From the NCBI RefSeq assembly GCF_046119375.1, contig NW_027362761.1, positions 454,522,001-454,586,000 of the forward strand: DNA of 64,000 nt. Reading direction: 5' to 3'. Under the pieces are notes generated by a model, which did no database searches, had not been told where the DNA came from, and saw only the letters and a list, made by a program, of their open reading frames with translations. The position numbers were made by a program, and so were the translations under genes. The stretch is from Phyllobates terribilis (Eukaryota). This document shows positions 4,341 to 64,000 of this stretch, in pieces (the stretch's first letter is position 1; each line of letters opens with the position of its first letter).

Positions 4341-4409
4341 TACATGTGCTTTTCCACAAAACACCAGTGGTTCACGTAGTGAATCTTACAGTTCTAACTT
4401 GCCAACCGT

Positions 4410-5017: not shown

Positions 5018-5129
5018 TCTAATTACAAATTTTTAACTGCATCTAGCCCAGGAAATACTTTATGCCTAGTAGCAGTGTCTGCTAGTCAGCGGATTATCCC
5101 AGCTGTTAAGCAAGCTACACCACCTGTAG

Positions 5130-5319
5130 TTTGGACACTTAATTTTTTTGAAAGGAAATGCTTCGGGCCCCCGGGACACTCAGTGAAGAGCATCGGGAGG
5201 CACCCCAAGGCACAGGGGCTGGGACTGGCGGTAGGACGCCTTGCGGTGGACCGCCAAGCTCGATCGTTATAAAAGCTTTTTAGCTGCAGCAGCTTTAGTG
5301 GACGCTACTGGAGCTGGAA
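5130..5319 (-). pseudogene. 18S rRNA-derived fragment, 3' part (downstream of the Tx1 insertion)
   Basis: Minus strand ttccagctccagtagcgtccactaaagctgctgcagctaaaaagct...gatgctcttcactgagtgtcccgggggcccgaagcatttcctttcaaaaaaattaagtgtccaaa aligns by eye to vertebrate 18S TTCCAGCTCCAATAGCGTATATTAAAGTTGCTGCAGTTAAAAAGCTCG...GGCCCGAAGCGTTTACTTTGAAAAAATTAGAGTGTTCAAA. Confidence 0.9.
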
Positions 5320-10124: not shown

Positions 10125-10136
10125 TGGGTGATCGAA

Positions 10137-32400: not shown

Positions 32401-34410
32401 ACGTAAACCGCCGTCCTTTTTTTTTACAAAAAAAAATCCAACCGCCACAGGAGACTTAGAGGGCCTAATGTGACCGGCGGCCAAACTTGTCTGTATGTAT
32501 TCTTCCAAAGCCTTCCTCTCAGGAATAGTAAGGTTAAATAAACGACTTTTAGGAAGAATCGCTCCAGGGACAAATTCAATAGAACAATCATAGTCTCTAT
32601 GGGGAGGCAAAACCTGCGATTCTTTCTCAGAAAAAACTCTCCAAAAATCCTGAATAGGAACAGGCAATTCTCCCCTATCCAAAGCTGCAATACGCCCGTT
32701 ACAACACTTGTCATAACATTTATGGCTCCAGGATTTAATTTCACTGGTAGACCAATCCAGTACAGGATTGTGAAATTTTAACCAGGGCAAACCCAATATT
32801 ACTAGAGAAGGCAAGTTATTCAACACTACCAAATCCAATTTCTCATGGTGAACATCATTAATAGTGAGAGGAAATTCACTGACCTTGAGAGTAATATTCT
32901 TCAAAGGGGAGCCATCCACAGAAACCACAGCAATGGGGGATGATAAAGGTTCAGGTTTTAAATTGAGTTTTTCCACGAATCCCCCATCAATTACATTCAG
33001 TGTAGACCCGCAATCAACAAACACCCGAAATTCCATTAATTTTTCCTGAGCAATCGTGGAAGCAGCTAAAAATATACCCTTGGAATTTAAACAGGCAATA
33101 CGGGCGTGACTGACCATTTTTTTTTCTTTCTTCATACGAAGCTCACAGCCTTTAATCAAATGACCAGATTTTCCGCAATAGAAACACAAGCCTTCCGAAA
33201 AACGACGGTCTTTTTCTTGAGAGCGAGGTGCCACCGATCCAATCTCCATCGGTTCACCACTGTTAGTACACACATTATCATAACCAGAAACTGACATAGC
33301 AGAGAATTTGCTCTCATTAACCCTAGCACGCAGTCTTCTATCCACCCGTATAGCTAATTGCATAGCCTGTTGCAAATCCTCAGGTGTAGGATAAGCAATT
33401 AGCAGGTCTTTAACCCTTTCACTGAGCCCAGCAAGAAATAGACTTTTCAGAGCAGAATCGTTCCACCCTGTTTGAGTGGACCAACGACGAAAATGAGTAC
33501 AATATTTTTCCACATTACCTGATCCTTGTTTTAAACGTCTCAACTCAGTCTCAGCTGATGCCACACGGTCAGGATCATCATATAATAATCCTAAAGCAGA
33601 AAAAAAACTATCCACTGATCTGAAGCATGTATCACTAGGTTGCAAAGAAAAGGCCCACTCCTGAGGCTCTTTGCGCAAAAGTGACATTATGAACCCTACG
33701 CGCTGGGATTCATCCCCAGAGGACTTGGGTCTCAAACGAAAATACAATAAGCAAGCATTTTTAAATGAAAAAAATTCTCGATGTTCACCAAAAAATAAAT
33801 CCGGCAAACATACCTTAGGCTCCAAGAAATATGCTCCAGGACAGTTACTCACGTGCTGACGGAGCTCGGCCACTTCCAGAGAGAGTCCCTGCAGGTGTTT
33901 AGCCAAATCCTGAACCGACACCATGATGGAACAAAAAAAAAAAAAAAAAAAAAAATCTTTCCTTAGAGAATTTGCAGGCTGGACTTACTGTTATGTTCTG
34001 CTACCAAAGCTAAGGAAAGAGAGGAGATCTGTCCCTACTATAGGACTCAGCTGAATCCCTACGATGTAACAGGGAACCTGATCCTGCGATCAGACCTGCT
34101 AAAGTCCTAATCTAGTCTGTACGGAGACCTATAGATGTGGGGAGGGAATCCCTACAAGTACTAAGGACTGGGAGGAATATGGGACACCTCCTAACAGAAA
34201 TAGTAGCAGACAGACGAACAAACAAAATAGATAGAACATAGAGGTCCGTAGACCAAGCAAACTAACAGAGCTAGATACAGAGCACAGGCTAGCTAGAAAG
34301 TAGATATACAATGAAGTCCAGCAAAGCCAGAAGGGCGGAGCAGGATTAAATAGGCCAACAAGGTCATGTGACCAGCAAAGGAAAAAAAACCTAACAGCAA
34401 GGTTCTAACA
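29423..34410 (-). mobile_element. Intact Tf1/sushi-type chromovirus (Ty3/Gypsy) LTR retrotransposon
   Basis: 422-bp LTRs at 29423-29844 and 33989-34410 differ at one position; 5-bp TSD gatga; PPT at ~29845-29858; PBS at 33977-33988. Confidence 0.97.
29857..33924 (-). CDS. Gag-Pol polyprotein (gag, CCHC knuckle, protease, RT, RNase H, integrase, chromodomain), 1355 aa, uninterrupted
   Basis: CFYCGKSGHLIKGC; VDCGS; YLDD; DAS; H-X-H...CTIC; DFIT, SDRGPQ, NGQTER; GPFKV; YEISRILDSR...QYLVAWKGF...WV. Confidence 0.97.
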   Translation of the reverse strand: MVSVQDLAKHLQGLSLEVAELRQHVSNCPGAYFLEPKVCLPDLFFGEHREFFSFKNACLLYFRLRPKSSGDESQRVGFIMSLLRKEPQEWAFSLQPSDTCFRSVDSFFSALGLLYDDPDRVASAETELRRLKQGSGNVEKYCTHFRRWSTQTGWNDSALKSLFLAGLSERVKDLLIAYPTPEDLQQAMQLAIRVDRRLRARVNESKFSAMSVSGYDNVCTNSGEPMEIGSVAPRSQEKDRRFSEGLCFYCGKSGHLIKGCELRMKKEKKMVSHARIACLNSKGIFLAASTIAQEKLMEFRVFVDCGSTLNVIDGGFVEKLNLKPEPLSSPIAVVSVDGSPLKNITLKVSEFPLTINDVHHEKLDLVVLNNLPSLVILGLPWLKFHNPVLDWSTSEIKSWSHKCYDKCCNGRIAALDRGELPVPIQDFWRVFSEKESQVLPPHRDYDCSIEFVPGAILPKSRLFNLTIPERKALEEYIQTSLAAGHIRPSKSPVAVGFFFVKKKDGGLRPCLDFREINKITVRNPYPLPLIPDLFNQLLGAKWFSKIDLKGAYNLLRMKEGDEWKTAFNTPVGHFENLVMPFGLTNAPAFFQNLINDILRPLIGKNVVVYLDDILIYSPDLESHWRSVREVLQLLMDNSLFAKLEKCEFAVQRISFLGYIISSKGFEMDPVKVQAVQEWPRPIGLKSIQRFLGFANYYRKFIKNFSSIVKPLSDLTRKGADAVQWSSEAIEAFVYLKERFTSAPILMQPDVTRPFLVEVDASSVGVGAVLSQDNGDGLHPCAFFSKKFSETELNYDIGNRELLAIKLAFEHWRHFLEGAEFPVQVLTDHKNLIYLDAAKRLNARQARWALFFSRFNFSVTYIPGTKNVKADALSRSFSPIVGAEKEENILQEGVVIAALDSVLEDEILKAQENAPSNTPHGRLFVPGTFRRDLFVECHESRLAGHPGISETKRLVGRSFWWPGWQKEVIKWVRQCTICARSKSSHTPAAGLLCPLEVPSAPWTHLAMDFITDLPPSEGFTVIWVVVDRFSKMCHLVPFVKLPCAKTLAKAFVKEIVRLHGVPTDIVSDRGPQLVARFWRAFCDRLGIHLSFSSGYHPESNGQTERKNQDVEQFLRCFVADNQEGWSEFLPLAEFALNNHTSSSAGCSPFFCCSGRHPSFGSFSKLGSAVPEEENFSDDLERVWTDVRGNLQEANRKSKDYFDRKRQEVLFAVGDMVWLSSRNLRLRIPSKKLGPKFVGPFKVLQVVNQSAVRLEVPTSWRINPVFHVSLLKKAVVSDGDASASVPPVVEDGEYEISRILDSRRYRGSLQYLVAWKGFGPEDNSWVRSDDVSASRLIRAFHRRFPDKPGPRGSGGSS

Positions 34411-34891
34411 GATGACATACTGTATATGCAATGCAGTGTGCTACTTCACTCTCTTAACTTTTAGTATGGAAGAATTGACAGTGTGGCAATGATATAATCA
34501 TATTTTTAGAATGATGGCTGTTGAACCTTAACAGATCTTTTTTGTTTGTTATGTATAAAGAGAGGTCGGGAATCTGTGGTCCATTAAGTTGATCCACACT
34601 TCAACAAACTGTATATTGTCAAAGGAATTCATAAGTGTAAACTTGATGTCAGGGTCCATCTGGTTCAGAAACTCATGGAAGTTATGCAGTTCAATAAATG
34701 TACCTTGCCAAAGTAGAAAAAAATCAACTTTGTACCTCCACAGATAAGAAAGTGGGACACAAATACAAGTTCCTACTCTAGGGCTGCCATAATAATGTTT
34801 GCGCATGCAGCCGCTATGTTTTCACCCATGGTGGACCTGCATAGCCGCATTTAAAATTTGCCACTAAATAGAAAATAATTCTGCTAAGGAC

Positions 34892-37800
34892 TAGTGTTGA
34901 GCCACCCCCGTAGTGTTCGGGTTCGGTTCGGTTCGTCGAACACCGGGATGTTCGAGGAACTGTTCGTCGAACTGTTCGTCGAACACCTTAGAACACCGTC
35001 GAACACCGTTAAAACCAATGGCAGGCAAACAAAAACACATAGAAACACATAGAAAACACCTGCAAAGGTGTCCAAAAGCTGACAAACTGCTCAGAAGACA
35101 CTCTCTTTAAAAAAGCCGGCCGGCAAATTCAGCAGCGGCATACACCGGTACCCGACAATTTAGACAAGAAGGAATAGAGCATCACACATAGATTAGATAG
35201 ATAGAAACATGTCAGTCACACATATAAGAAGCACAGTGACAGTGTTGGTTACTGCACTTGTCATTTAGTGTAAAGGATTTATTAAAAAAAATATTAGTGT
35301 TTTCATGCACCGTCTCTTTAAAAAAGCCGGCCGGCAATTCAGCATCTGTACCCGACAATTTAGAACAGAAAGAATAGAGCTTCACACATAGATTAGATAG
35401 ATAGAAACATGTCAGTCACATATATAATAAGTACAGTGATAGTGTTGCTTACTGTACTTGTCATTTAGTGTAAAGGATTTATTTAAAAAAATAATAGTGT
35501 TTTCATGCACTGTCTCTTTAAAAAAGCCGGCCGGCAATTCAGCAGCGGTACCCGACAATTTATAACAGAAAGATAGAGCATCACACATAGATTAGATAGA
35601 TAGAAACATGTCAGTCACATATATATGAAGTACAGTGATAGTGTTGGTTACTGTACTTGTCATTTAGTATTAAAATAAAGGATTTATTATTAAAAAAATT
35701 GGCGTGGGGTTCCCCTTAATTTTAGTCTCTAGCGGAGGTTAAGCTGACGGCTGGGGCAGATGTTTGAAGCCTGGGAAGGGGGTAATACCCACGGAGCTTC
35801 CCAGGCTACTAATATCAGCCCCCAGCTGAATACATAGCCTTTACTAGCTATTAAAATGGGGGACCCCCCAAAAAAAATGACGTGGGGTCCCCCCTAATTT
35901 AATAGCTAGCAAAGGCTAGGCAGACAGCTGGGGGCTGATATTAATAGCCCAGGAAGGGAGCCATGAATATTGGCCCCCTCCCAGGCTAGAAACACCAGCC
36001 GTCAGCCGCCCCAGAAATGGCGCATTCATAGGATGCGCCAATTCTGGCACTTAGCCTCGCTCTTCCACGCTGCCCTGGTGCGGTGGCAGGGGGTAATAGG
36101 GTTGGGGTTGATGTCAGCTTATAATGCCAGCTGACATCAAGCCCAGGTTAGTAATGGAGAGGCGTCTATAAGACACCCCCATTACTAACCCCATAGTCAA
36201 AGTTAAAAAAAACACAAACACCCAGAATAAAGTCCTTTAATTGAAATAAAGACACAATCCTTTATTGTTCTAAATTAAACCATACTTACCATCACGCCCA
36301 TTCCAGCTGAAGCCAACGATCTCCTGCAATAAAAGAAAAATAATAAAGCAACCTCATCCTTACCTTTCCATGGTTCCCACGACAGCTTCAGCTCTGCTAC
36401 ATCGAGATGACAGGCTGGACCGCAGCAGAACGCTGCCATCCAGCCTGTCATCCCGCAGACACTGAGAAGCGCAGGCTTGCTTGCGCTGCTCAGCGTCTCT
36501 CTGTGACGACATCCAGATGAGCCGAGTTCATGTCCAATGAACTCGGCTCACCTCATGCACGTCACTGACAGCGTGGGAAAATTCTCACGCTGAAGCGGTG
36601 AGTGCAGGAGAATTCTCCCACGCTGTCAGTGACGTGCATAAGGTGAGCTCATTTTCATGCACGTCACTGACAGCGTGGGAGAATTCTCCTGCACTCAGCG
36701 CTTCAGTGTGAGAATTCTCCCACGCTGAAGCGCTGAGTGCAGGAGAATTTTCCCACGCTGTCAGTGACGTGCATGAGGTGAGCCGAGTTCATTGGACATT
36801 AACTCGGCTCATCTGGATGCCCTCACAGAGAGACACTGTGGAGCGCAAGCAAGCCTGCGCTTCTCAGTGTCTGCGGGATGACAGGCTGGATGGCAGCGTT
36901 CTGCTGCGGTCCAGCCTGTCATCTCGATGTAGCAGAGCTGAAGCTGTCATGGGAACCATGGAAAGGTAAGGATGATGTTGCTTTATTATTTTTCTTTTAT
37001 TTCAGGAGATCGTTGGCTTCAGCTGGAATGGGCGTGATGGTAAGTATGGTTTAATTTAGAACAATAAAGAATTGTGTGTTTATTTCAATTAAAGGACTTT
37101 TTTCTGGGTGTTGTGTTTTTTTTAAATACTTTACTAGAAATTCATGGTGGTCATGTCTAATATTGGCGTGACCCCATGAATTTCGGGCTTAGGGCCAGCT
37201 GATAATGCCAAGCTGGCCCTAACCCCTTTATTACCCAGTGAGCCACCGCATCAGGGCCCTGGATGAGTTGGGTACAGCGCCAGAAGATGGCGCTTCTATG
37301 AACGCGCCATTTTCCGGGGTGGCTGCGGAAAAAATTTAGAACAATAAAGGATTGTGTCTTTATTTCAATTAAAGGACTTTATTCTGGGTGTTTGTGTTTT
37401 TTTTAACTTTGACTATGGGGTTAGTAATGGGGGTGTCTTATAGACGCCTCTCCATTACTAACCTGGGCTTGATGTCAGCTGGCATTATAAGCTGACATCA
37501 ACCCCAACCCTATTACCCCCTGCCACTGCACCAGGGCAGCGTGGAAGAGCGAGGCTAAGTGCCAGAATTGGCGCATCCTATGAATGCGCCATTTCTGGGG
37601 CGGCTGACGGCTGGTGTTTCTAGCCTGGGAGGGGGCCAATATTCATGGCTCCCTTCCTGGGCTATTAATATCAGCCCCCAGCTGTCTGCCTAGCCTTTGC
37701 TAGCTATTAAATTAGGGGGGACCCCACGTCATTTTTTTTGGGGGGTCCCCCATTTTAATAGCTAGTAAAGGCTATGTATTCAGCTGGGGGCTGATATTAG

Positions 37801-38786
37801 TAGCCTGGGAAGCTCCGTGGGTATTACCCCCTTCCCAGGCTTCAAACATCTGCCCCAGCCGTCTGCTTAACCTCCGCTAGAGCCTAAAATTAAGGGGAAC
37901 CCCACGCCAATTTTTTTAATAATAAATCCTTTATTTTAATACTAAATGACAAGTACAGTAATCAACACTGTCACTGTACTTCATATATATGTGACTGACA
38001 TGTTTCTATCTATCTAATCTATGTGTGAAGCTCTATTCTGTCTGTTATAAATTGTCGGGTACAGATGCTGAATTGCCGGCCGGCTTTTTTAAAGAGACAG
38101 TGCATGAAAACACTATTATTTTTTTTGATAAATCCTTTACACTAAATGACAATTACAGTAAGCAACACTGTCACTGTGCTTCGTATATATATATGTCTGA
38201 CATGTTTCTATCTATCTAATCTATGTGTGATTCTCTATTCCTTCTATTCTAAATTGTCGGGTACAGATGCTGAATTGCCGGCCGGCTTTTTTAAAGAGAC
38301 GGTGCATGAAAACACTATTATTTTTTTTGACAAATCCTTTACGCTAAATGACAAGTACAGTAAGCAGCACTTTCACTGTACTTCGTATATATGTGGCTGA
38401 CATGTTTATATCTATCTAATCTATGTGTGAAGCTCTATTCTTTCGGTTCTAAATTGTCGGGTACCGGTGTATGCCGCTGCTGAATTGCCGGCTTTTCATG
38501 TTTCACTGTTGGCACTGTTCCCATCGATTTGGGCAATCGCTGTAATGCCACAACCACCATGGCTGTGGCATTACAGTGAGTGGCAGACAATCCCTGCATG
38601 ATTGGTGCTCTAAATAGCGCCAGACATGCAGGACACGCTTTTGGTGCACGAACAGTTATCGAACATAACCTCGAACAGCCGAATTTTTTGCAAATTGTTC
38701 GGGTTCGTCGAACAACTCGAACACCGCCCAAAACAGCTCGAATTTGAGATTGGCGAACAGTTCTAGTCGAACACCGCTCATCTCTA
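34892..38786 (+). mobile_element. Non-autonomous hAT derivative carrying a giant internal palindrome
   Basis: Ends tagtgttgagc / gctcatctcta; perfect 8-bp TSD ctaaggac; shares the left ~210 bp and right ~150 bp with the 39428-50484 element. Confidence 0.95.
35103..38495. repeat. ~3.4-kb inverted repeat with nested sub-palindromes at the centre and ~190-bp tandem repeats in the arms
   Basis: aaaagccggc...ggcatacaccggtacccgacaattt (35111-35160) mirrors 38451-38495; ccatggttccc (36368) mirrors gggaaccatgg (36951); centre near gagctc at ~36645-36650. Confidence 0.93.
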
Positions 38787-39315: not shown

Positions 39316-40574
39316 ACTACGTACCCAATGTAATAAGATCCATAAATTACTAAACACAGACCCTGAACCTGATACGGTAGGATGACCTGATGGTGGTGGG
39401 TCTTTTAGAGATTTGTGTATTTATGGTTAGCGTTGAGCCACCCCCGTAGTGTTCGAGTTCGGTTCGGTTTGTCGAACACCCTTGTGTTCGCCGAACTGTT
39501 CGTCGAACTGTTCGTCGAACACCTTCGAACACCGTTAAAACCAATGGCAGGCAAACGAAAACACATGGAAACACATAGAAAACACCTTCAAAGGTGTCCA
39601 AAAGCTGACAAACTGCTCAGAAGACATAACTAACACATGGAAAAGTGACAAGTACATATAGTCATGCGAAAAGAAAAGAGGTGGAGGAGTAAAAGGAGGG
39701 GGAGACACAGATATAGGCATGTCATGCCCTTCTAAAATCCAAAAAGTGAGAAGCCGACATGGCCAGTCCGTTCCTGCCCGTGCCACCTCCGTGTCGCCGG
39801 GTTTGTGCCAGAGCCGCGGTGGACCCTGATGGCCAGCCCCCCTCTCCCAATACTGGTGCCTGTCCGCTGGTGGGTCGAGCCCCCCCGCGGTGGGGGGGGA
39901 GTAACATCTGCAGAAGAAAGACCATCTTCCAGCCAAACTAACATGTCGACTTCTTTTCGTGGACAATGTGATACGATCCCTTCGTTACGGACACGCCCAT
40001 CGCTACAAATTCCAGATGAGGCACAAAAACAGCAGGTGCTTCAGCGGATATCAAGTGCTTCTTCAAGTGGGCTCTCCTCCACCTCAATTTCAACATCACA
40101 AATACTCCAGTCCTCAGAGGTGTCACCCCAATCGCACTTGCTTCCTCACAGCTCCCAAGTCTCCAGCTGCCCGTCTGAGTATGGGGTAACACAGATGGTT
40201 GAGTCTGCAGAGCTGTTCACTCATACTATAGCCTGGGAAACGGAGGTCTGCTCCAGAGCTTCTGTTAATCCAGATGAGGAAATGATCTGCACTGATGCCC
40301 AGAATCTTTATAAGTCGGATCCAGGACCAGATGAAGAAGGTTCTGAGCATAATGTAGACCCTCGTTCCCAAACTGTAACTCCTGTTGGTGGAGACAATGA
40401 TGAAGACAATGATGAGACTCAAATACCTGATTGGAGCGACAACTTGACCTTTCGGTCAGGGCAGGAAGAGGTTGGCTTTGAGGACGACGGGTGTGATAAC
40501 ACACAGGGTGATGATGACAAGGTTGGAGATCCCACTTACTGTCAACCCACAGTCACCCAGTCGATGAGGTCACC

Positions 40575-41680
40575 CGGGCCTTTGCCTGGCCTTGGGGATG
40601 TCGCGGTGATCGGCTCCCTGGCCCGTACCCTGGGGTCACTCTTTAAAAGGGTGGATAATTGTTAATTTTATAAGAGTTCGTGACGCCACCTGTGGTATCT
40701 GGTGAGAAGCACCAGCGCTGCAGCAGTCCACTGAGGCCCTTGATAAGGCAGCTCGATGGTATAGCTCCCCACAGGTGGAGCTAGGTCTCAGGGCAGCGTA
40801 TGCAGGGGGAATGCAGGACAGGCGAGACCCAGCTGGGTCAGAGCAAGAACGGGAACGGACACGGTAGTCACTTCAGTACCTTTTACTGGAGGAAATTCAG
40901 GCACCTCCCGGAGCACTGTAGGGTGAAGGGTGCATATCAGGATCCTCCCCAATGAGCGGGTGTAGGGCCTCCTGTTTCTTGCCTCTGTGTAGTAAGTTTC
41001 TGACCTGCCTGGAGCTAGGCCTAACTTTGTCTCTGTCCTGCGCTGGCTGACCTTGTGGTAGGGCCTTCTCTTGGAGTTCACGCTCCCAGTATGCGGGGCC
41101 TAAGCGTCTCCTGGCTCTGTTACGTATCAGCACCTTAGCGATCCTGGGACTTGTAGTTCTCCAGGGATTCCGGTTATGCCTTACTGGGTCATAGAGATCC
41201 CCGTAAGCTCGGATCCGGTGTCCGGTAAATGCTTCGGGGTGAGCTGGTTAAGCTCCTCTGCCCCTTATGTACTAACTCGCCACTCGCCTTCGGCCTACTC
41301 GGGCCCTCACTAGGCTATACACACTAACGGCAGCTTGCCGCGCTTCACTGATCTTATGGCGCCGGCACACCTTAAGCTCTATCTGGGCTCCCTGAATCTA
41401 GCTAGCAGGAGCCTCATGCTCCACTGCTGAACTATTAACTGAGTTCTCTAGACTAGACTGAGCTCCACTGCAGGCTGACCTCTCTAAGGCTTCTCTACTG
41501 CAGGAACTCTTCAGAGGAACTGAACTGCCTAGCTCTACCTTCCCTATTTATATCCCTAACGGGCTCCCTCTGCTGGTCTGAGGTGGAAGGTGGAGATGTG
41601 TGAATGTTTATGGGGGCCTCTTGTGGAGGATTCCATCAATACACTCTTCTAGGATCTGTGATACCAAGCGCAGCGTCACA
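40575..41680 (-). mobile_element. LTR-like insertion (~1.1 kb) in the hAT ORF
   Basis: Related to 43389-44575 (gacgccacctgtgg, ccacagg...cagggcag, cctatttata); minus-strand 5' end tgtgacgc; left boundary approximate; no TSD seen. Confidence 0.55.
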
Positions 41681-43388
41681 GATGCTATTGACGACGAGGT
41701 TAGGTTGCGCCTTCCTGGACAGAGACGGAGTACTGGAAGCACGTCAACAACTGCATCCTCAACCACAACTCTGCCTCTGACCACAAGTCGTAGTAGCTCT
41801 TCAGGTCGAATGGGCTCTAAGCCTTGCATAGCCTGGGCATTTACTCAGATCGATAAGGATGACCCAACTCGTGTTATCTGTAATATTTGTCACCAAAAGC
41901 TAAGTAGAGGCCAAAAAATCCATAGTTTGAGTACTTCATGCATGTACCGTCACATGGATATGAAGCATAAGTTGCAGTGGGAAGATCACTGTGCTACAAT
42001 GCGGCCTAGCAGGCTGGGCCAACCACCGTCTGCCCCATCTTGTGCATCCGCGGCCTCTTCATCCTCTGTTTTTGGACGCAGACCTGCCACCTCTTTACCT
42101 GCAACAGCCAGTGTGATTGGCAGGTCGTCAGTTCATTGGGAAGTGGAAACACCTGCTGGTGTTGAGCGCTCTCTGACATCGAGAGCACCACCTTTGGATC
42201 AAGGCAACCTAACATGTCCGCCTGCATCTTCCTCACAGACCGGCAGTTTGCCGGGGACACCCTACTCAACCCCGTCAAAGCACAACAGCCAGCCCTCGGT
42301 CCCTCAGATGTGGAAAAGTAAAAGACCGTTTCCTCCTAGCCATGAGAAAGCTAAGAGGTTGAATTTCACCTGCAAGCTGTTGGCTACAGAAATGCTGCCT
42401 TTCCGCCTGGAGGACACAGTGGATTTTCGAGACCTTATGTCCGTCGCAGTGCCCCAGTACCAGATGCCCAGTCGGCACTACTTCTCAAAGAAAGGTGTGC
42501 CTGCGCTCCACCAGCATGTCGCACACACATCACCGCTTCTTTGAGAAACTCTGTGTGTGACAGGGTGCATTTCACCACAGACACTTGGACGAGTAGGCAT
42601 GGACAGGGGCGTTACATGTCGCTGACTGGGCACTGGGTAACTATGGTGACAGCAGGACAAGGGGCTGCTGTCCAAGTCTTACCGTCCCCACGAGTTTTGC
42701 GTCAATCCTCTTTATCTCGAAGTTCCTCCAGTGCTTCTGCCTCCTCAACCTCCTCTTGGTCCTCCACCTGCACCCAAAGCCTGTCTGGTAATGCCACCTG
42801 CTTTCTAACTGCGCAGAAGGAATCCTGCACACCTCCTTACTATGCTGGCAGCAGGGCTCAACGGCATCAGTGTTTACTTTGAAATGTCTGGGAAATGTGA
42901 GTCACACAGCTGAGGACTTGTGGTCAGCTCTGGAGACCCAGTTTCATGAAAGGTTGTCTCCACTGGACCTGCAACCAGGGAAGGCCGTGTGCGACAATGC
43001 TGCAAACCTGGGTGCGGCCCTTCGCCGGGGCAATGTCACACACGTGCCTTGTATGGCTCACGTGTTAAACCTGGTTGTCCATAAATTTTTAGCCCACTAT
43101 CCCGGACTAGATGGCCTTCTGCAGAGGGCACGGTCGCTGTGTGCTCACTTCCGCCGTTCGCATCCCGCAGCTCAACGACTTACATCCCTACAGAAGTCGT
43201 TGGGCCTGCCAGTTCACCGGCTGAAATGCGATGTGCCGACACGGTGGAATTCAACTCTGCACATGTTGCAGCGACTGTGGCAGCACCGACAAGCTCTGGT
43301 GCAATACGTTCTGACGTATAGCCTGTGCCAACGAGATCCAGAGGTGGGGCAAATCACGCTGCAGGAGTGGTCTCAGATCAGGGACCTA

Positions 43389-44575
43389 TGAAGTTGACGC
43401 GCCTCCTGGGCCGTGGGGTACCCTGAGCCGGGCCGGTAGACGCTGGGGGTTGTAGTCACTGTGGCGGTGACCCGGTCCGTGACCCAGGGCGGTCAATCCA
43501 ATGGTAATTTGTATATATGGATTTTATAATGTCCGACTACGTCACCTGTGGAGTGCGGCCAAAGGGGCCGCCGCTGCGGAACAGTCCTCTGAAGCTGGTG
43601 GTTTTGCAGCAATGCTATTACTCACCACAGGAAGAGTGTAGCTTCAGGGCAGTGTGGGTGGATGATGGTGATTGTAGTGCAGGGAGTCAGTAATGAACAA
43701 AGAGTCCGTGTGATGCAGTCCCAGGATCTTTACTCACAGTTGTTGCAGTCCAGATTACAGGTACCAGAGCAATCTCACCCGTCATGCTGTGCGTACTCAG
43801 TGAAGGGCTCAGTCCACCCCCAGATAGCTCCGGAGTACTTAGCAGGACCCCCTTCTGTGTGTCCTTTCTCTGGCCTTCTCCCTGCACCTCACAACCAGTG
43901 ACACTTCTATCCGGTATCCTCGGGCCTTGGCGGGCGACTTGTGTTCCGTCCCCTGGGTCCTATGTGGCTACCTTCTTAGTGAGACTGGTGTGGACTTTTG
44001 CCTGCAGTACATGAAATGCTGCAGCCTCCGGTTTCTAGTTGAGCCTTGCTGTTTCTCCTCTAGTTGAGGGACCGGTTCCCCTTATCTGGCCTGACCCCTC
44101 TACCTCCTGGTAGCAGCAGGAGTACGGGTGGCCTTCTGCACGGCCCGTAGCCCTAGGGTCCCTTCGGTTCCTGGAGCCTTCCTGCTCCCACTCCTCTCTT
44201 CTCTCCTTCAGTCCTGGGCCTCCCAGGCTAGGCCCGCCTCCGGAGCAGAGCTCATGCCGAGCCTCTGCTCCTGTCACTTTTCCTCCTCTGACTGGCTTGC
44301 TCTTTCTAAGATGGATTCCTATTTATACTCTCCCTGTCATGTGCTCCCCTAAGCTGCTCCCCTAAGCACCCACTACATAGGACCCTCCCACCAGCTAGGG
44401 ACCTGGGACTGTGCTCTCCCTTAGGAGCAATCTTGCCCTACCCCCACTGCGGGTATGTGTTGGATGCAGGTGTTAGGGTCCCGAGCCATACGCCTTCCTT
44501 ACTTGCGGGTGAGATACCACACCTCTGGGTGAGATGCAGTAACTCTGTGGCGACTGAACCCTCAGGGGCGCCACA
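43389..44575 (-). mobile_element. Solo-LTR-like insertion (~1.19 kb) in the hAT ORF
   Basis: hAT sequence stops at gggaccta and resumes at cacccttctgcac. Minus strand starts tgtggcgccc, with TATAAATAGG ~250 bp in. Homologous to 63561-64000. No TSD. Confidence 0.7.
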
Positions 44576-46628
44576 CACCCTTCTGCACAGTTTTGAAATG
44601 GCGACGAAGATGTTTAGTGCTGACGACGATGCCATTATCAGCACCACTATTCCGGTGATTTACATGCTGGAGCACACATTAAACAGAATTCAGAGTCAGG
44701 TGGTGGGACAAGAGTAGGTGGAGGAAGTAGAGGAGTAGTTGTATGCGGAAGGGATAACATCTCCAAGGTCCAGACGGTTGGCAGCACCAAGGCGGCAGGC
44801 ATGGGAGGGTGGGGGAGAGGGATTAACCAGGGCGCATGGTAGCAGACAAACTGTTGAGGAAGGTGCAGGAGCCGAGGAAGAAGTGGAGGATGAACTGGCG
44901 ATGGGCATGGAAGACTCATCAGATGAGGGAGACCTTGATCACATTTCTGTTGTGCGAGGTTGGGGGGAGAGGGCAGAGGAAGGAAGCATGATTCTTACCT
45001 CGCTACCAACACAACAAGGACTTGGTCCTCCTGGATGCGCAAGACACATGAGTGCCTTCTTGCTGCACTACCTGCAACATGACCCTCAGATTGCAGAATT
45101 CGAAGTAATCCCGACTACTGGGTTGCCACACTCTTAGATCCCCGGTACAAAAGTAAATTTGCCGAAATAATTCCTGCCATAAAAAGGGATTGACGCATGC
45201 AGGAGTATCTGCAGACGCTGTTGCAGAATCTTACATGTGCTTTTCCACAAAACACCAGTGGTGCAAGAAGTGAATCTCACAGTTCTAACTTGCCAACCGT
45301 GGGACTGTCGAGTCTTTATCACTCAAACCGTAACAGTAACACAGTATCTGCTGGTAACAGCAATTTTGTGGAATCGTTTCACCACTTTTTTAGACCATCC
45401 TTTGCAAGGCCACAGGAGACAAGAAGTATGACACATAGTCAATGCCTAGAGAGGATGGTGCAGGAGTATCTCCAAGTGAACATCGAAGCCATGACTGTGT
45501 CACTGGACCCTTGCTCATTATGGTATTCCAATCTGGAAAAATGGCTGGAGCTCGCCACTCACGCCTTGGAGATCTTGTCATGCCCTGCAGCCAGTGTTCT
45601 CTCTGAACGTGTGTTCAGCGCTGCTGATGGTGTGCTGACAGATAAGCGCACGCGGCTGTCCACTGAGAATGTAGACAGACTCACGTTCATAAAGATGAAC
45701 AAATCATGGATTCGCAAGGACTTTTCTAACCCTGTGTTATCCTTGGGAGACTAAAAGCTTGAGGATTTGGTCATAACACCTCACCAACCGTTTTAAGCAA
45801 CTGTGGGGCAATTGATGCCACTTAACCCTAGAACGCATGACCATAAAAATCTACACTTTCATATACCTGGGGCCTTTTAGGCCCGTGTGCAAATAACATG
45901 GAATAACTCAAACTCAAATGACAAACAACTATATACATGAAGAATACCTAGAGTTTCAAAATTCTAGCGAAAGTAATCTTGCAGAAAATAGAAAACAATT
46001 AACAGGGCGGGACTGCGAGGCCCCAGGTATGCGTTCTAGGGTTAAGTGGTGTCTGGGCCACAATTTTGGGAAAAAATGGAGACTCTTTTTGGAGTCCCCT
46101 TGCTGTGTCTTACGTGACGTTGGCATCGTCAATTCCAGGTGGGTTGGGTCGCCCCCCCCCCCTTTTAACTGTAAGAAACTACATACACTATGGCTTGGGG
46201 TAACACAGATGGTTGAGTCTGAAGAGCTGTTTACTCAGAGGTCTGCTCCAAATCTTCAGTGTCTGCTAGTCAGCGTAGAATTTTTAACTGCATCTAGCCT
46301 AGGCAATACTTTGGGCGTAGTAGCCCAGCTGCGAAGCAAGCTGCACCGCCTGTGTATCTAATAAGAATTTTTAAATGCATCTAGCCTAGGCAGACTGTGG
46401 GGACCCCAACCAAACCCAGACGCTCAGCCCCCCTACCGCCCCCCTTTCCTTGACAATACAATAATGTAACTCTTCCAACTGGATGGGTGAGGATCGGTTT
46501 ATTAACTCTTTATACTCATTCCATTAGAAAGGCATTTTATTTCTAAAATAATTCAGCTTGTTGCAGCATGCCCTGGGTCTCCACTCCGGCAACTTGGCCA
46601 ACAAGTGTAACTCTCCAACATGTCCTTT

Positions 46629-47275
46629 CTATTTCCAGGCCACGGAGGATCCTGCGTACTCGTATGCAGGACTCTGACCCCCACCCATCACTCTTAACGC
46701 TTGTTCCACTCCATCCTGGAGTCCTGACAGGAATATGTCCAGTCCAATATCCATTAAGTGAACACCGTCAGGCCGTATGAGGCCTGCTTTATCTCCTTCC
46801 AGTTGTCGGTGTCGTACCACTACACCGCCTCTGTCTCTTCTAAATTTTGCCATCCGAATATTTATTACCCGCCTTGTCCGTTCGATGGCCGTGATGTCTC
46901 GCGCACCTTGCCATACCGCTATTGGCACAATCTCTGACCATACTATAGCTAGTTTTGTGAAAAATTCTCTGAAGCGCTCAGTGTCTAGTTTCATTATTGC
47001 CATTAGTTATGCGCTCTTGTGATGACCTATGTTGTTTCCCCCGGCCTGTATAACTAAGATGACCGGACATCTTGCCTCTCTCCCTACCTTGATTACCTCC
47101 ATTAGTACCTGTGGCCATAGCAGGCCTCTAATACCTCTCCAGTTGAAATATGTGTTATGAAACTCTAATTTCCTCCCGCCTGGGCGGACTTTCGCCCTTT
47201 TTTCTGCCCAATATATATACGAGTGGCCTATCACCCACACTATTGGCTTAGCGTCACCTGTGAAAGAAACAAACC
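46629..47275 (-). pseudogene. SGNH/GDSL hydrolase domain downstream of YR; one in-frame stop at 47007-47009
   Basis: VWVIGHSYIYW (block I Ser), RGIRG, AGGNN (block III), DGVHL (block V His). Confidence 0.8.
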
Positions 47276-47278
47276 ACG

Positions 47279-48166
47279 TTAGGATAACAAGTCCGGTCTT
47301 ATGTATCTTGCCAAACACGTGGATCGCCATCTCCCTATCCTCTGAACTTCCGTTTCTGATAGTCCTGCTCTTGCTGCTTCCGTGGCCGCGCCTATGCGGA
47401 ATGAGTGTGTCCCGTAATCTTTGGGGTGGTTCCCTGCTGATGTTATGCATTTATTAAATATAGCTTGGAACTGGTATCTTGATAATGGCGTTCCATCAAT
47501 GTGTGATAGGAAGAAATTACTTTGTGATCTGATGGTTAGATATGTTTTTACTATTGTTACCCGACTCAGTGTACCGTTTGTGGGTTGTAGAAGTACCCAA
47601 GTGCCCCTGCCCGCTGGAACCGTTTTCGATTTGTGTATGCGTAGACGTATTGCATTATTGGCTATGACTACGTCCTGGTGTAATAAGCCTCCACTGGTGG
47701 TAATTTTGGATTGAGGGACTAACTCACTTATGCATAGCGCCCCGAAGAAGGCAATCACAAATGCAGTAGACAGTAGTGTTGCTTCAAATTGTGAGTGTCA
47801 TGTTAATGGCGTTAGGGATATGATGTGAGAAATCAGTTTTGGTGACACGGGACGGGACGTCTACACTCCTGACTTGGCTGACCCCTTTTCCACCCTTTTA
47901 TGGATTGTCTGATGATGAATCTTTGTCACATCTCCCCAATTCAGTAGTTGGTAGTGAAATGCTACTCCGGTCAGACACCACTGCGCTGACGCCCCTGATA
48001 TGCCCCTCATCATTAGCTGGTGGAGAAATTCTATGGTGACTTGTGATCTGGCTTGTTCACATTGGTCAACCCGTCTGCCTGCTACTAGTCGTGTCCACTC
48101 TTCCCATGCCTTACCGTATGCTTGCCACGTCGACGGGGCAACTGACGCTCTGATTAATGGTATCAA
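47279..48166 (-). pseudogene. Tyrosine recombinase of a DIRS-order element (frameshifted)
   Basis: AFFGALCISEL (catalytic R position altered), KSKT, HSFRIGAAT, IGRWRS..LARYIRP. Confidence 0.88.
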
Positions 48167-48489
48167 CTATTCGCCACTAGATCCCATAGGGAAGGTGGGC
48201 AACTGTTGCCCGATGGGTGGGCGTTGTGGAAGAGCTCTGTGAAAATCTGCCAATTGAATTGCTATAAAGCGTTAGCAGCAGCTTTAGACCCCTTAGCATA
48301 GTGGCTAGCGCGGACCCATACATTGTGTTTTAGGCACAGGAATGCTAGCCTTGGTAGTAAGCCTAGCACTGGGAGAGACGATGATGCCATCTTATTAATG
48401 CAGTGCGCTAGGCTGGTGTTTTTTGTTATGAAGCATATATTTTTGTAAGCCAGGAGCGCGCCCCATATTTCTATTGCTACCACTATTGG

Positions 48490-49570
48490 GAAGAAAAATT
48501 ATTTTCAGGGCTAGATGCAGCTAAAAATTATTATTAATTTAAAAGCTGGTGGAGCTTGGTATAGATGGCCTAATACAATGAGTCCCACACACTGCTAGAA
48601 GGCCAAATATTTTTTCAGAGCTAGATGCAGATAAAAATTATATTCAATTTGCAACCTGATGGAGGTCAGTATAGATGGACTAATAGAACAAGTCCCACAC
48701 ACAGCTAGAAGCCCAAATATTTTTTCAGAGGTAGATGCAGAAAAAAATTATTTTGAATTTGCAGCCTGATGGAGGTCAGTATAGATGGACTAATAGAACA
48801 AGTCCCACACACTGCTAGAAGGCCAAATATTTTTTCAGAGCTAGATGCAGAAAAAAATTATATTCAATTTGCAACCTGATGGAGGTCAGTATAGATGGAC
48901 TAATAGAACAAGTCCCACACACTGCTAGAAGGCCAAATATTTTTTCAGAGCTAGAAGCAGAAAAAAAATATTTTCAATTTGCAACCTGATGGAGGTCAGT
49001 ATAGATGGACTAATAGAACAAGTCCCACACACTGCTAGAAGGCCAAATATTTTTTCAGAGCTAGATGCAGATAAAAATTATTTTTAATTTGCAACCTGAT
49101 GGAGGTCAGCATAGATGGACTAATAGAACAAGTCCCACACACTGCTAGAAGGCCAAATATTTTTTCAGAGCTAGAGGCAGATAAAAATTATTTTGAATTT
49201 GCAACCTGATGGAGGTCAGTATAGATGGACTAATAGAACAAGTCCCACACACTGCTAGAAGGCCAAATATTTTTTCAGAGCTAGATGCAGAAAAAAATTA
49301 TATTCAATTTGCAACCTGATGGAGGTCAGTATAGATGGACTAATAGAACAAGTCCCACACACAGCTAGAAGCCCAAATATTTTTTCAGAGGTAGATGCAG
49401 AAAAAAAATTATATTCAGTTTGCAACCTGATGGAGTTCAGTATAGATGGACTAATAGAACAAGTCCCACACACTGCTAGAAGGCCAAATATTTTTTCAGA
49501 GCTAGATGCAGATAAAAATTATATTCAATTTGCAACCTTATGGAGGTCAGTATAGATGGACTAATAGAAT
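48490..49570 (+). repeat. Tandem array of ~10 x 110-bp units inside the hAT right arm
   Basis: g(g/c)ccaaatattttttcagag at 48601, 48711, 48821, 48931, 49041, 49151, 49261, 49371 and 49482. Confidence 0.97.
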
Positions 49571-51170
49571 GATGCTATGCCCAAAAGTTTTACTTCACTA
49601 GGTGCAGTAAAAAAATTGGTATTCTATACACAGGTGGTGTAGCTTGCAACACAGATAGGCTACTCCACTGACTAACACACTCTGCAATAGGCCAAAAAGG
49701 ATTAGCTTTGCTAGATTTAGCCAAATGCTGTGAAAAAAACTTGCACAGCACTGGCACAGACCTGCCTGGCAAAAACTGATAGGAACGATGTAACTTAGTC
49801 CTGAATATGACTGCAATTACAATTAGTCTTTACTCCCACAACCTATCTATTTAAGAGCACAGACCTACCTGATAAAAGTCGTAGGAAATGCTGTAACCTA
49901 GTCCTTAAAAGGACTGCAATCACAACTATTCCCTACTCCTAAGCTATCTGTAGATTTTTGCGAAAATTGGCTTGAAATTAACAAGGTATAGCGCACACAG
50001 CAACAGCGGTGCCGTCTAACATGCAGCTGCAGCAGTGCTAAAATGGTGGCGACGGGGAAAATGGCTGGGTCTTATAGGGCAAGGACATGTGACATACACT
50101 GCCAATGACACATGCCCTTGCTTGTGTGAAAAAAAGCACTTCGCTCTGTGTGTGCGCTGCTGATAGGCTGACAGATTGCACCTCCCCACTGTAAATGCGG
50201 GAAAGAGAAAAAAAAAATGGACATCTTCAATATTCCTGTAGAGATCCATCCCCTGCCCCTCCCCCCACCCCGCTGTACACTCAAACTGCGTATTAACATT
50301 AATTTTCATCATGACTGAGAAAAAATCCAGTTATGATTTTGGTGCACGAACAGTTATCGAACATAACCTCGAACAGCCGAATTTTTTTCAAATCGTTCGT
50401 GTTCGCCGAACGGCTCGAACACCGCCCAAAACAGCTCGAATTTGAGATTGGCGAACAGTTCGAGTCGAACAACGCTCATCTCTATTTATAGTACCACATA
50501 TATAGCATGAGTAACAAGGTACTCAGTCAACAGAAATAATACCATCAACTTTAAGACCAACACACTTTAGATGCATAATGATGTCAAACTTAGGGTCAGA
50601 CGAAATCTCTCTGTGCACCACAATGTATGAACTAGTATTCAAGACAATGAAAGCACCCCCCTTATTGGCGGGTTAGTAATGATGTCACCGTCATGTACCA
50701 GTTCTCACATGGCTGAGATTTCCTTACTTGTCATGTTAGAACTTGCAAACCAACTATATTGCCAATTAGCTTACTATAAGACCTTAGTAATAGCAGAGAT
50801 AAAGGCATCAATGGAAGTAAAAGATGTACGTGGCACAAGCTTACTTTTGTTACAGCAAATTGCTGTAAAAACAATTCAACATTTAAAGTTTTAGGTATGG
50901 GTATGCATATGAATAGTTTGAAGGAACTAAAGAGCCTAGATAAGTCCAATTCTAACTGAATCCAGTCTATATCTATGCTGCAGCAGGAGGTTGACCAAGG
51001 GAGTATGCTTTGATCCATACTCACTCTTAGACCTTTACTCACTCCCATGCCTCTGGCTTCTACTCATTAGCCTACACATTTTGAGTATCCATAGCCAGGT
51101 TTTAATATAGTGCTTTTGTGGCTTCTCCACTTGATTTTCACTGCTGGGACATACACTACACTTTGGTATA

Positions 51171-60539: not shown

Positions 60540-62518
60540 AAATACCTGCCCGCAAATCGGAATCATCTACAGCCCAAAGTCATGCTTGAGCCAACCCCTG
60601 AAGACTGTATATCATATGCCAGTTCCCAAACTGTATTAGGGCAGTTGACGTAAAACACATTCATATGATGAAGACGCCGAACGCAGGGTCCCAATATTAT
60701 TATAATTACAAACAATACTTTTCAGTAGTGCTGTTAGCCTTGGTTGACAGTAACTACCAGCTTGTAATTGTAGATATTGGGGCCTATGGAAGAACTGGAG
60801 ATACGTGAATCTTCAATTCTTAATGGGTTGGCAGCTTCAGACCAATGAAATGGGTGTGCCACCCCCTCAGATACTCCCTGGCTCAAGTGGAGAAGCTCCA
60901 CTTCTGGTTGGGGATGAGACATTTCAGCTGGGTCATCATGTGATGAGGTCTTATCCCCCGCTGTGGTTTGGACTAGCGATGGTGGATTTTCAATTACAGG
61001 CAAAATGTCAATGATGCCATCATGGCCAGTGTAATACTACATAATTTCATCCACATCCATGACTCACCTGTGTCTGTGGAGGCTTAGGGAGGATTGGTCA
61101 CCAATCCTGGTTCAGTATCACAGGTTGGGCCCAGACGCCATGATCCTTCTGGCCTCAGAGTCCGCAGATTATTTTATTACACCTGAGGGGTCAACACCCT
61201 GGCAAGAAAATTATGTTGTGTAATGTTTGGAATATATGAGGTTTTTTTTCCTTTCCCCCACAACCAAAAAAAGCACATGACTTGTGTATTTTTTTAAAGT
61301 TCTGCTTAAAAAGAGTATGAATAAAAAGACACAAGCAAATGTCAAACGAAACCTAAAGATATGTTTACTTGTCACAAACAAGAAAAACCTGAAGTCGAAA
61401 ACGATGGCAAAACCACCGATCTAATGAAGAAATAAAGTCTTTTTCCCAAAACAAACCTACAAAAACCATTATAAATGATAAAATAAGGTACGATATGTGG
61501 GAGGGGTGGATGGACTGGCAGAAGGATTATGTTGTGAAGAAGGATGAGGGGAGGGAATATATGTCATCCAGGATGGCTGTGGGCTGAAAGAGGGGTGGTA
61601 TGTGTGTGCCTATGGAGGCACATAGCACCCATGGGCACTAGGGCCACATGCTCCCCACTGGTGGCGCTCCCTGAGATGGCGTTGGCTCCTGTGACCTACA
61701 TTGTAGGTATGTGAGCATGGACCATGGTGTCATCTTTCCCCTGTCCCACTGATGTGGTGCTGCTCAAATTGCCCAGCATATCCATGGAAAGATGGTGGTA
61801 ATGGTGGTAGTGGTGGCCGGGAGGCAATGCTGTTGCATGTTGTCTCTGGCCACATCTCAGCTGCCTTTGTTCCAACATCTCAAAAGGGGATCATTGGGTG
61901 GTATTGCATCATCGAGGAGGAGCAGTATGGCTGACTTTGTGAGGAGCTTCAGATTCACAGTAACCTCTCACAGTTGCAGCGCCATATTGAGGCAAAAGGC
62001 CTCCTTCCCATCATCATTCACTGTGTGAGACAGATAATCATTGAATCGACTATCTACCTTGCTTCATGTGGCGTTGCAGAGGGGCTTCCTTCTTTGCCGG
62101 GCTCAGCGGGGTGTGGGTGCCGCTTGAGGTGAGGTGTCAAGCGGCAAGGTGAGGCTGCTGCTCTGTGCCTGATCCTCATGCTCAGGGTCGATTGCTAGCC
62201 CTGCTGATGGTCCTGGCTCCTCCTCTTGTGGGTTCACCACCTCGGACTCAGATAGTGTGTCCATGTCCTGTAAGTTGGTATCAGTTTTGTAATTAAAAAT
62301 TTGCATGATAAGTAAAACTATAAAGTGCATATAAAGTACTAATTTTAACAAATACACAGAGGTTTGAACATACGGTCTGAGATCCATGATGGGCGCAAGG
62401 AAATTCATCCCATCCTTGTAGAGATATGGTCTTTTTGGGGGGCCACTTCTCCACTTTTGGCTTACTGCTGGTGCTCCCTCCTATACTGATCCATGCAGCT
62501 GTGCCATCTTCTTGTCAT
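60540..62518. mobile_element. PIF/Harbinger remnant: DDE transposase (+, ~60540-61200) and convergent Myb/MADF-type partner ORF (-, ~62100-62518)
   Basis: FPNCIRAVDVKHI...YNYKQYFSVVLLALVDSNYQLVIVDIGAYG; LVGDETFQL; minus strand RPYLYKDGMNFLAPIMDLRP. Confidence 0.78.
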
Positions 62519-63021
62519 TAGTGTTGAGCCACCCCCGTAGTGTTCGAGTTCGGTTCGGTTCGTCGAACACCCATGTGTTCGCCGAACTGTTCGTCGAACT
62601 GTTCGTCGAACACCTTCGAACACCGTTAAAACCAATGGCAGGCAAACAAAAACACATAGAAACACATAGAAAATACATTCAAAGGTGTCCAAAAGCTGAC
62701 AAACTGCTCAGAAGACACAACTAACACATGGAAAAGTGACAAGTACATATAGTCATGCGAAAAGAAAAGAGGTGGAGGAGTAAAAGGAGGGGGAGACACA
62801 GATATAGGCATGTCATGCCCTTCTAAAATCCAAAAAGTGAGAAGCCGATACGCTCAGTCCGCTCCTGCCCGTGCCACCTCCGTGTCGCCGGGTTTGTGCC
62901 AGAGCCGCGGTGAACCCTGACGGCCAGCCCCCCTCTCCCAATACTGGTGCCTGTCCGCTGGTGGGTCGAGCGAGCCCCCCTGTGGTGGAGGCAGCTCTAA
63001 GCTTTTTAATTTAAATTGTCT

Positions 63022-63289
63022 CTCTAATTTGAATAAATACACTTTAAATCCATTTACAAGGATCTATTGGAGGGCAAGTCTCATGCCAGCAGCCGCGTAA
63101 TTCCAGCTCCAGTAGCGTCCACTAAAGCTGCTGCAGTTAAAAAGCTTTTATAAGGATCGAGCTCGGCTGTCCACCGCAAGGCATCCTACTGCCAGTCCGA
63201 TCCCCTATGCCTTGGGGTGCCTCCTGATGCTCTTCACTGAGTATCCCGTGGTCCCGAAGCATTTCCTTTGAAAAAATGAAGTGTCCAAA
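63022..63289 (+). pseudogene. Uninterrupted 18S rRNA-derived fragment (~268 bp; helix 18 into V4)
   Basis: ...ggagggcaagtctcatgccagcagccgcgtaattccagctccagtagcgtccactaaagctgctgcagttaaaaagct...; one G is missing from GCCGCGGTAA. Confidence 0.92.
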
Positions 63290-63403
63290 CTACAGGTGGT
63301 GTAGCTTGCTTAACAGCCGGGATAATCCGCTGACTAGCAGACCCTGCTACTAGGCACAAAGTATTTCCTGGGCTAGATGCAGTTAAAAATTTGTAATTAT
63401 ATA

Positions 63404-63560
63404 CTCTCGTTGGATGCTGAGAAAGCATTCCATAGAGTCTCCTGGCACGCCATATATGATTCTCTTAAAAAGCTTGGGGTAGGGGTCTAGGGGACCCTTT
63501 TATAGCCAAAATCACGGCCCTATATCGCAATACGTCACCTAGGCTGAAGATAAATGGAAC
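63404..63560 (+). pseudogene. L1 RT fragment (cargo), cut by an LTR-like insertion at 63561
   Basis: SLDAEKAFHRVSWHAIYDSLKKLG...RLKINGT. Confidence 0.85.
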
Positions 63561-64000
63561 TGTAGCACCCTGAGGGCTCGGTTGCTACAGAGGTATTGCA
63601 CCTCACCCAGAGGTGTGATATCTCACTCTCAGGTAAGGATGTAGTGTGGATCAGGACCCGACACCTGCATGCATTACACCACATTGCCGTGGGGCAGGGC
63701 GACCAATATGCCCCTGAGATGGGCACGACAGTCCCTGTCCCTGGCTGGAGTGGGGGGAGGGAACACTGAGGAAGGGGAACCCTGTAGTGCAGGAGCAGGG
63801 AGGAAGCAGTTCCTGGGTGCATTGAGAAGGGAGTATAAAAGGTGGGCACCATCTTAGTTCAGTGCAGAGAAGTCTGAGCAGAAGTGGCAGGGAGCAGGGG
63901 CTCTGCATGAGCTCTGCTCCGGAGGCGGGCCTAGTAACAGAGGCCCAGGCCTGGAAGAGGGAGAAGGAAGGAAGAGGAGCGGAGAAGGCTCCAGGAACGA
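63561..64000 (+). mobile_element. LTR-like insertion of the same family as 43389-44575
   Basis: tgtagcaccctgagggctcggttgctacagag...cacccagaggtgtg matches the reverse complement of 44575-44470; TATAAAAGG at ~63833. Confidence 0.7.

Follow-up and report, generated by a model that had tools for sequence, protein, structure and literature searches.

The window, the whole 64-kb stretch of DNA analysed here, carries members of one hAT transposon family, two of which (copies 1 and 2) contain a fragment derived from 18S rRNA and two of which (copies 3 and 4) are free of it. Copy 1 lies at the end of the window, with its parts in the following order:

62519-62991, plus strand: hAT terminal module of ~474 bp, with the TIR TAGTGTTGAGCCACCCC at 62519-62535 and subterminal CGAACA motifs
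62840-62991, plus strand: GC-rich part inside this terminal module
62992-63007, plus strand: junction filler of ~16 bp between hAT module and 18S, origin unassigned, with identical letters in copy 2
63008-63289, plus strand: 18S rRNA-derived fragment, from the helix-18/530-loop region through V4, decayed and no gene
63290-63399, plus strand: one ~110-bp hAT repeat unit (the "ctagatgcag" segment)
63400-63560, plus strand: start of an internal L1 ORF2 RT fragment, with the LDAEKAF motif region in its translation
63561-64000, plus strand: LTR-like repeat that starts with TG, interrupts the L1 fragment and runs past the window end

Copy 2 belongs to an element at 1-14857 and, from its TIR inward, comprises:

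14401-14857, minus strand: hAT terminal module, with the TIR at 14841-14857
14291-14400, minus strand: filler and 5′ part of the 18S, ending ...GCAGCCGCG
5320-14290, minus strand: full-length L1/Tx1-like LINE that splits the 18S
5136-5319, minus strand: 18S, 3′ part, with 91.8% identity to copy 1
5013-5135, minus strand: hAT repeat unit
4411-5012, minus strand: L1 RT fragment of ~600 bp, internal to ORF2, ending where a hAT transposase fragment starts
2845-2967 and 4341-4411, plus strand: duplicated hAT transposase piece, with 94% identity to copy 3 at 45022-45143 and 45232-45302
2968-4340: Tc1-like element, truncated at one end, that splits the duplicated transposase piece
2684-2860, plus strand: hAT repeat units right after the transposase 3′ end
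1-2650, plus strand: hAT transposase gene truncated by the start of the window, C-terminal part only, with 88-93% identity to copy 3

The 18S-free copies are:

39428-50484, plus strand: copy 3, the 18S-free reference, with left end, transposase with BED and hAT-dimerisation domains, repeat array, native right end and nested insertions
34892-38786, plus strand: copy 4, a non-autonomous derivative with both ends of copy 3

The hAT family and its two 18S-bearing arms

Copy 4 is flanked by a perfect 8-bp target duplication (ctaaggac) and copy 3 by the pair tttatggt/tttatagt. The ORF region of copy 3 contains a zf-BED domain (E 1e-9), Dimer_Tnp_hAT is found in two copies (E 1e-11 to 1e-12), and the transposase gene at 1-2650 contains the latter domain at E 1e-11 and matches the Hermes transposase (E 4e-15). 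Together, the 8-bp duplications of copies 3 and 4, the BED and hAT-dimerisation domains, and the likeness to Hermes show the family to be a true hAT. The nearest database relatives of the transposase are ZBED4/6-like proteins from dendrobatoid and other frogs, with Anomaloglossus and Ranitomeya among the closest, which agrees with a frog as host, probably one akin to poison frogs.

The TIR present at 62519 on the plus strand and at 14857 on the minus strand is matched four times in the window, where chance alone would give 0.15 matches. The right terminus of copy 3 differs from the left one and is related to it, with agreement at 9/12 positions when the left end TAGTGTTGAGCC is set against the reverse-complemented right end TAGAGATGAGCG. 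The motif CGAACA occurs 6-8 times per terminal 120-150 bp, including 7 times in 122 bp at the end of copy 1, against a window-wide density of 0.9 per kb, and these subterminal repeats are presumably binding sites of the transposase.

The 18S-free copies contain further structures of their own. Inside copy 4 (34892-38786), ~200-bp repeats, some inverted and some direct, are nested over 3.4 kb and form a palindrome made up of palindromes; because this palindromic copy sits between the common ends, the family is prone to internal rearrangements. Inserted in the copy 3 transposase gene is a 1.19-kb TG...CA LTR-like repeat on the minus strand (43389-44575), and just past the transposase stop lies a ~250-bp MITE-like insertion on the plus strand (45800-46050) with inverted ends of ~30 bp (…cttaaccctagaacgcat / atgcgttctagggttaag…), which is absent from the hAT copy at 1-2686. 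Other elements in the window include a complete Ty3/gypsy-type LTR retrotransposon on the minus strand (29423-34411), with a single 1355-aa gag-pol ORF that includes a chromodomain, and a Sleeping-Beauty-like Tc1 transposase ORF of 359 aa on the plus strand (17502-18581) with HTH_SB, HTH_Tnp_Tc3_2, and DDE_3 domains. The 423-bp LTRs of the Ty3/gypsy-type element are 99.8% identical, so its insertion is very young. By eye, the flank of copy 2 beyond 14857 looks Tc1-derived.

The terminal module of copy 1 shares 95% identity with 39428-39896, where the transposase-encoding copy 3 begins, and the likeness stops at 62991 in the arm and at 39896 in copy 3. Because the 18S-free copy diverges from the arm exactly at 62991, the 18S sequence is an addition to the hAT. 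The TIR, hAT left end, 18S fragment, repeat segment, and L1 RT fragment were all found where a first-pass annotation, made from the letters alone, had placed them.

The same annotation had described two arms with a common order and common junctions between differing flanks, and alignment of copies 1 and 2 bears this out. Identity is 93.6% between 62519-63097 and 14857-14291 and 94.6% between 63101-63560 and 5319-4859, with each module, taken separately, 92-97% identical and all modules alike in this respect. Junctions and derived substitutions are identical in the two copies. Homology sets in precisely with the TIR, between flanks that are unrelated; since nothing outside the TIR is common to the two copies, the arms are independent insertions and not a segmental duplication, the outcome that would have spoken against transposition.

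The copy 2 arm is continuous with the transposase gene at 1-2650, which lies in the opposite orientation, and no hAT terminus intervenes. Read along the plus strand, the element at 1-14857 thus consists of transposase, repeats, scraps, repeat, 18S in antisense, and an inverted left-end module ending at 14857. In this element, at least, the arm serves as an inverted duplicate of the left end, positioned beyond the transposase. The arms had been described as Pack-type left arms, and they do carry host-derived internal fragments; given the transposase gene on the opposite strand, neither the term "left arm" nor a non-autonomous status is established, and the arms are no longer read simply as left arms that belong to deletion derivatives. 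Both 18S-bearing copies run off the window (copy 1 at its end, copy 2 at its start), so neither has both ends in view.

The 18S fragment and the other pieces of the mosaic

In a scan of the whole window against Rfam, the single family above its gathering score was SSU_rRNA_eukarya (RF01960), at 62999-63118 with 61.2 bits against a threshold of 50, which settles the 18S identity proposed in the first-pass annotation. A permissive local scan with the SSU model raised the score to 80 bits (E 1.8e-21) and gave a confident alignment of model positions ~487-780 to window positions ~63008-63289, with nothing past 63289 aligning credibly. Only these positions of the 1831 in the model are covered, far short of a full-length SSU gene, and the fragment is internal to 18S at both its ends. 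Sequence native to the hAT brackets it on both sides at fixed junctions.

The 18S piece departs from the model at universally conserved positions and has several base pairs broken. The 530-loop motif, itself universally conserved, contains substitutions and has lost 1 nt (GCCGCGGTAA / GCCGCGGUAA). The departures from the 18S consensus that had been quoted as common to both copies, CTCATG for CUGGUG and GCGTCCACTAAAGCT, are indeed present in both. The piece is a decayed fragment or pseudogene and no rRNA gene. Between copies 1 and 2, the 3′ part of the 18S has the lowest identity of all modules (91.8%), and the piece appears free of constraint, as would passive cargo decaying like the modules next to it.

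The "ctagatgcag" segment that follows the 18S was correctly recognised and placed at first pass, though not as regards its status as cargo. The unit at 63290-63399 matches, in the same orientation, an array at 48494-49569 and 49630-49716 in the 18S-free copy 3, and inverted, shorter units lie at 46257-46390 (matching at 46279-46324) and 2684-2860. In the 3′ region of copy 3, the stretch 48494-49569 (plus strand) consists of ~10 tandem units of 110 bp that are 93% alike. Joints leading back from 63399 to 63290 in read contigs reflect tandem duplication of the unit in other copies. The segment is thus one unit of a ~110-bp internal repeat native to the hAT, and no cargo.

The L1 piece corresponds to the interior of ORF2 (human ORF2p ~590-800), and its copy 2 part matches residues ~673-796 of human L1 ORF2p (E 2e-14), the sole match among solved structures. 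In amino acids it shares ~40% identity with the RT encoded by the window's 9-kb LINE, and for this reason is assigned to another L1 lineage. No 3′ end, poly(A), or target duplication of the kind that marks a canonical L1 insertion was found for it, and its immediate neighbours are the hAT repeat at one end and a fragment of hAT transposase at the other. An ORF2-internal piece lacking those features, with hAT sequence on both sides, is a captured fragment and no normal L1 insertion.

The Tc1-like piece in copy 2 (2968-4340) is related by tblastn to the SB-like transposase of the window (E 3e-16), and a search for inverted repeats around it found none, which marks it as a truncated element. The LTR-like repeat at 63561-64000 of copy 1 is 70% similar to the 1187-bp TG...CA insertion at 43389-44575. 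It is lacking from copy 2, is very deep in reads (~3 million summed depth), and is entered across the 63560 junction by contigs of organisms B and F. An insertion private to copy 1 is ruled out by these contigs, and the LTR-like insertion is instead a feature of the commoner subfamily. The arm is thus pieced together from short segments of at least four origins (18S, L1 RT, Tc1-like, and transposase fragment). The 18S and L1 RT sequences named in the first-pass annotation belong to this content, whose extent had been drawn too narrowly, as it takes in the transposase fragment, the Tc1-like piece, and the LTR-like insertion of the subfamily.

In copy 2, the 18S is split by an 8.97-kb LINE that lies in sense orientation to the 18S and interrupts the helix-18 motif at GCCGCG/TAA/TTCC, with the target TAA missing at the LINE/18S junction. 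Both ORFs look intact, ORF1 encoding a ZCCHC3-type RBD and a CCHC motif and ORF2 an APE endonuclease, RT, and zf-RVT; the best solved relative is L1 ORF2p (E 3e-46). The combination of LINE and 18S occurs once within the 64-kb window, and among the loose ends listed for read contigs on 62400-63660, none is dominant at 63097-63101. An Engystomops locus with a relative of the 9-kb LINE contains rearranged LINE pieces, no 18S, and no hAT arm, and is silent on site specificity.

Copy number and distribution among organisms

The family was followed in Logan contigs of four sequencing runs, taken at ≥90% likeness and placed on 62400-63660. In the organism A run, words from the unique flank have a depth of 12-18, and every module of the arm sums to 1.5-4.5 million (~33,700 contigs), a factor of ~1e5 over that flank; the depth does not jump at the junctions hAT/18S, 18S/repeat, and repeat/L1. 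Summed contig depth is, by the tool's own warning, no copy number and is good for an order of magnitude only; read in this way, it puts the family at the order of 1e4-1e5 copies. That a 64-kb sample from a multi-gigabase genome should contain two arms also points to a high copy number. The estimate is not absurd, given that a poison-frog genome paper counts 265,361 hAT pieces (PMC11152451). Copies resembling 18S probably far outnumber the real 18S genes in this frog genome. The 18S and L1 RT fragments are, as the first-pass annotation held, fixed internal parts of the hAT family.

The outermost ~140 bp of the terminal module have about twice (~2x) the depth of its interior, and the depth of the interior is about that of the 18S. 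This last agreement suggests that 18S follows most terminal modules and that the canonical junction from module to transposase is a small minority. A picture of one normal left arm and one 18S arm per element is accordingly incomplete.

According to the read contigs, copy 1 differs from the majority letter at ~14/1142 positions. At 63035, 63199, 63201, and 63278, the majority letters are the copy 2 states, which we take to be the 18S-like states of vertebrate 18S, and such 18S-like majority states are what decay of a single captured ancestor should leave. From TIR to L1, the arm is covered wholly or for the most part by contigs of organisms B, D, and F, with 7-14 differences (~99% identity), and one 2777-nt contig of another organism starts exactly at the TIR and runs through the 18S, the L1, and the LTR-like part. 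Because B, D, and F carry the arm, the capture is older than the split among these organisms, or the arm has been transferred among them. The capture took place once, before the amplification, as had been proposed: its junctions and derived substitutions are common to the two insertions in the window, to most genomic copies, and to contigs of three other organisms.

A run of organism A of only 10 million letters holds about half of the 31-mers of the arm, as do small runs of several other organisms, in keeping with an extremely high copy number and a broad distribution across related species. Of the cargo-specific 31-mers, 57-67% are present in RNA-seq assemblies of organism A; with so many copies, this may simply be read-through transcription. 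A 138-aa ORF through the copy 2 arm had no match in a protein database search. The cargo-specific 19-mer GGAGGGCAAGTCTCATGCC was set aside as a marker in metagenome contigs, where it led to four loci sharing only 19-22 bases with the arm, either by chance or as unrelated rRNA variants.

Origin of the mosaic and its significance

The arm probably goes back to a rearranged hAT in which 18S filler came to lie between an inverted left end and the element's own repeat region, and which was then amplified as a transposon. An internal rearrangement of an ancestral hAT would have joined an inverted 474-bp left module to its own 110-bp repeat region, and ~280 bp of 18S gene sequence, with the ~16 bp of unassigned letters, would have been copied in at that junction as filler, the donor being host rDNA or another source. 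The L1 RT fragment and the transposase piece with its Tc1-like element would have been added in the repeat region before or early in the amplification, and a later subfamily would have gained the LTR-like insertion. Since the terminal module carries the TIR and the CGAACA repeats, presumably bound by transposase, the whole mosaic was mobilised with the transposon; it has been amplified to the order of 1e4-1e5 copies and is found nearly unchanged in related frog species. We infer that the capture itself proceeded by template switching in break or gap repair, and the order of events given here is to be read in the same spirit. A patchwork from at least four sources fits serial template switching; microhomology at the junctions is ambiguous and at most ~4 nt, and the capture mechanism has left no unique signature here.

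In the strongest alternative, two inverted hAT left ends were used together as a macrotransposon, and contiguous, TE-rich host DNA with an orphan 18S and L1 and Tc1 remnants was captured between them in one step. The far end of the element at 1-14857 is an inverted left module, unlike the native right end of copies 3 and 4, and a stretch of several TE scraps would be ordinary in so repeat-rich a genome, both of which agree with such an event. It is nevertheless unlikely, because hAT-native sequence directly brackets the 18S and the other scraps sit within the hAT repeat region beside a duplicated transposase fragment, and because no remnant of the body of a second element or of unique host DNA is visible.

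Considerably less probable is an RNA-mediated origin, in which 18S rRNA, alone or as an rRNA-L1 chimera formed by template switching of the L1 RT, was reverse-transcribed into a break in the hAT. L1-driven chimeric retrocopies of small RNAs are known, 18S rRNA is an extremely abundant RNA, and the L1 RT fragment lies ~110 bp downstream of the 18S in the same orientation. The pieces themselves argue otherwise: neither the 18S nor the L1 is accompanied by poly(A), an L1 3′ end, or a target duplication, the L1 piece comes from within ORF2 (~590-800), a hAT repeat unit separates it from the 18S, and the 18S lacks both of its natural ends. Finally, explanations that dispense with transposition (segmental duplication, assembly artefact, or hAT insertions into dispersed rDNA units) could appeal to there being only two copies in the window, neither with both ends, but have next to nothing left in their favour once it is considered that homology starts exactly at the TIR between unrelated flanks, that an independent read set yields ~33,700 contigs at ~1e5x flank depth, that the TIR is the exact point where contigs from other organisms break, and that the 18S is only ~280 bp long and hAT-bounded on both sides at fixed junctions.

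Several known systems offer comparison. DNA transposons that capture other sequence have been amply documented in plants, and in animals they are rare. Non-plant cases include a fungal hAT that has amplified a housekeeping gene (PMC6710886) and Turmoil-1 of C. elegans, which has incorporated gene fragments in its terminal inverted repeats (PMC2572040). As with these elements and with Pack-MULE and Pack-TIR elements, a TIR transposon here multiplies unrelated host fragments from several sources, and the cargo is non-functional and decaying; the differences are that the cargo consists of an rRNA fragment and transposon scraps without protein-coding pieces, that the host is a vertebrate, and that the copy number is very high. 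Unlike in a classic non-autonomous Pack element, the cargo lies beside a transposase gene in at least one copy.

Abortive gap repair of Ac/Ds yields filler DNA in internally rearranged hAT derivatives. These derivatives are alike in keeping the terminal modules around an interior that is deleted, duplicated, or inverted, with short stretches copied from other places at new junctions, and a palindromic relative is present in the window; the filler of the present family differs in being unusually long (~280 bp), in coming from rDNA, and in being fixed in a hugely successful subfamily. 5S-derived SINEs and Cassandra LTR elements with 5S obtain a Pol III promoter from their rRNA part, which has a function for the element. 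Here too, a mobile element has spread rRNA gene sequence across the genome, whereas the part dispersed is an internal 18S piece with no known role and no sign of constraint. In Xenopus, Tx1L and Tx1D represent an L1/Tx1-group LINE at a fixed site inside a DNA transposon. The L1/Tx1-like LINE of copy 2 similarly lies inside 18S borne by a transposon, in sense orientation and at the most conserved 18S motif, with the differences that the carrier is a hAT, that the target is rRNA-derived, and that a single LINE instance is present in the window. Both Tx1 terms occur in passages of PMC4494074 and PMC6719617.

A full-text literature search returned no rRNA gene fragment carried by a DNA transposon and no cytogenetic hint from dendrobatid rDNA FISH, and the keyword-matched passages of the poison-frog genome papers do not link rRNA to hAT. 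What is unusual is the cargo; the event, transposon sequence capture, is of a known kind and is no new mechanism.

In these frogs, tens of thousands of 18S-like copies of helix 18 and V4 would receive an "rRNA" label in repeat annotation, and they could distort estimates of rDNA copy number, seed rRNA-like RNA-seq reads, and confuse probe or primer design. The family is also a clean example of a successful hAT that builds a mosaic arm from filler DNA.

In one copy, the hAT-borne 18S has been the substrate for a LINE. The helix-18 motifs scattered by the hAT, tens of thousands in number, might conceivably be harmless landing pads, available genome-wide, for a Tx1-type LINE specific to a site in 18S, which would make the 18S more than passive cargo, though this reading of the one instance is more doubtful than not. 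If true, landing pads of this kind would let a retrotransposon bound to rDNA escape from it, and the arrangement would be a natural intermediate toward the "LINE inside DNA transposon" partnerships exemplified by Tx1L and Tx1D.
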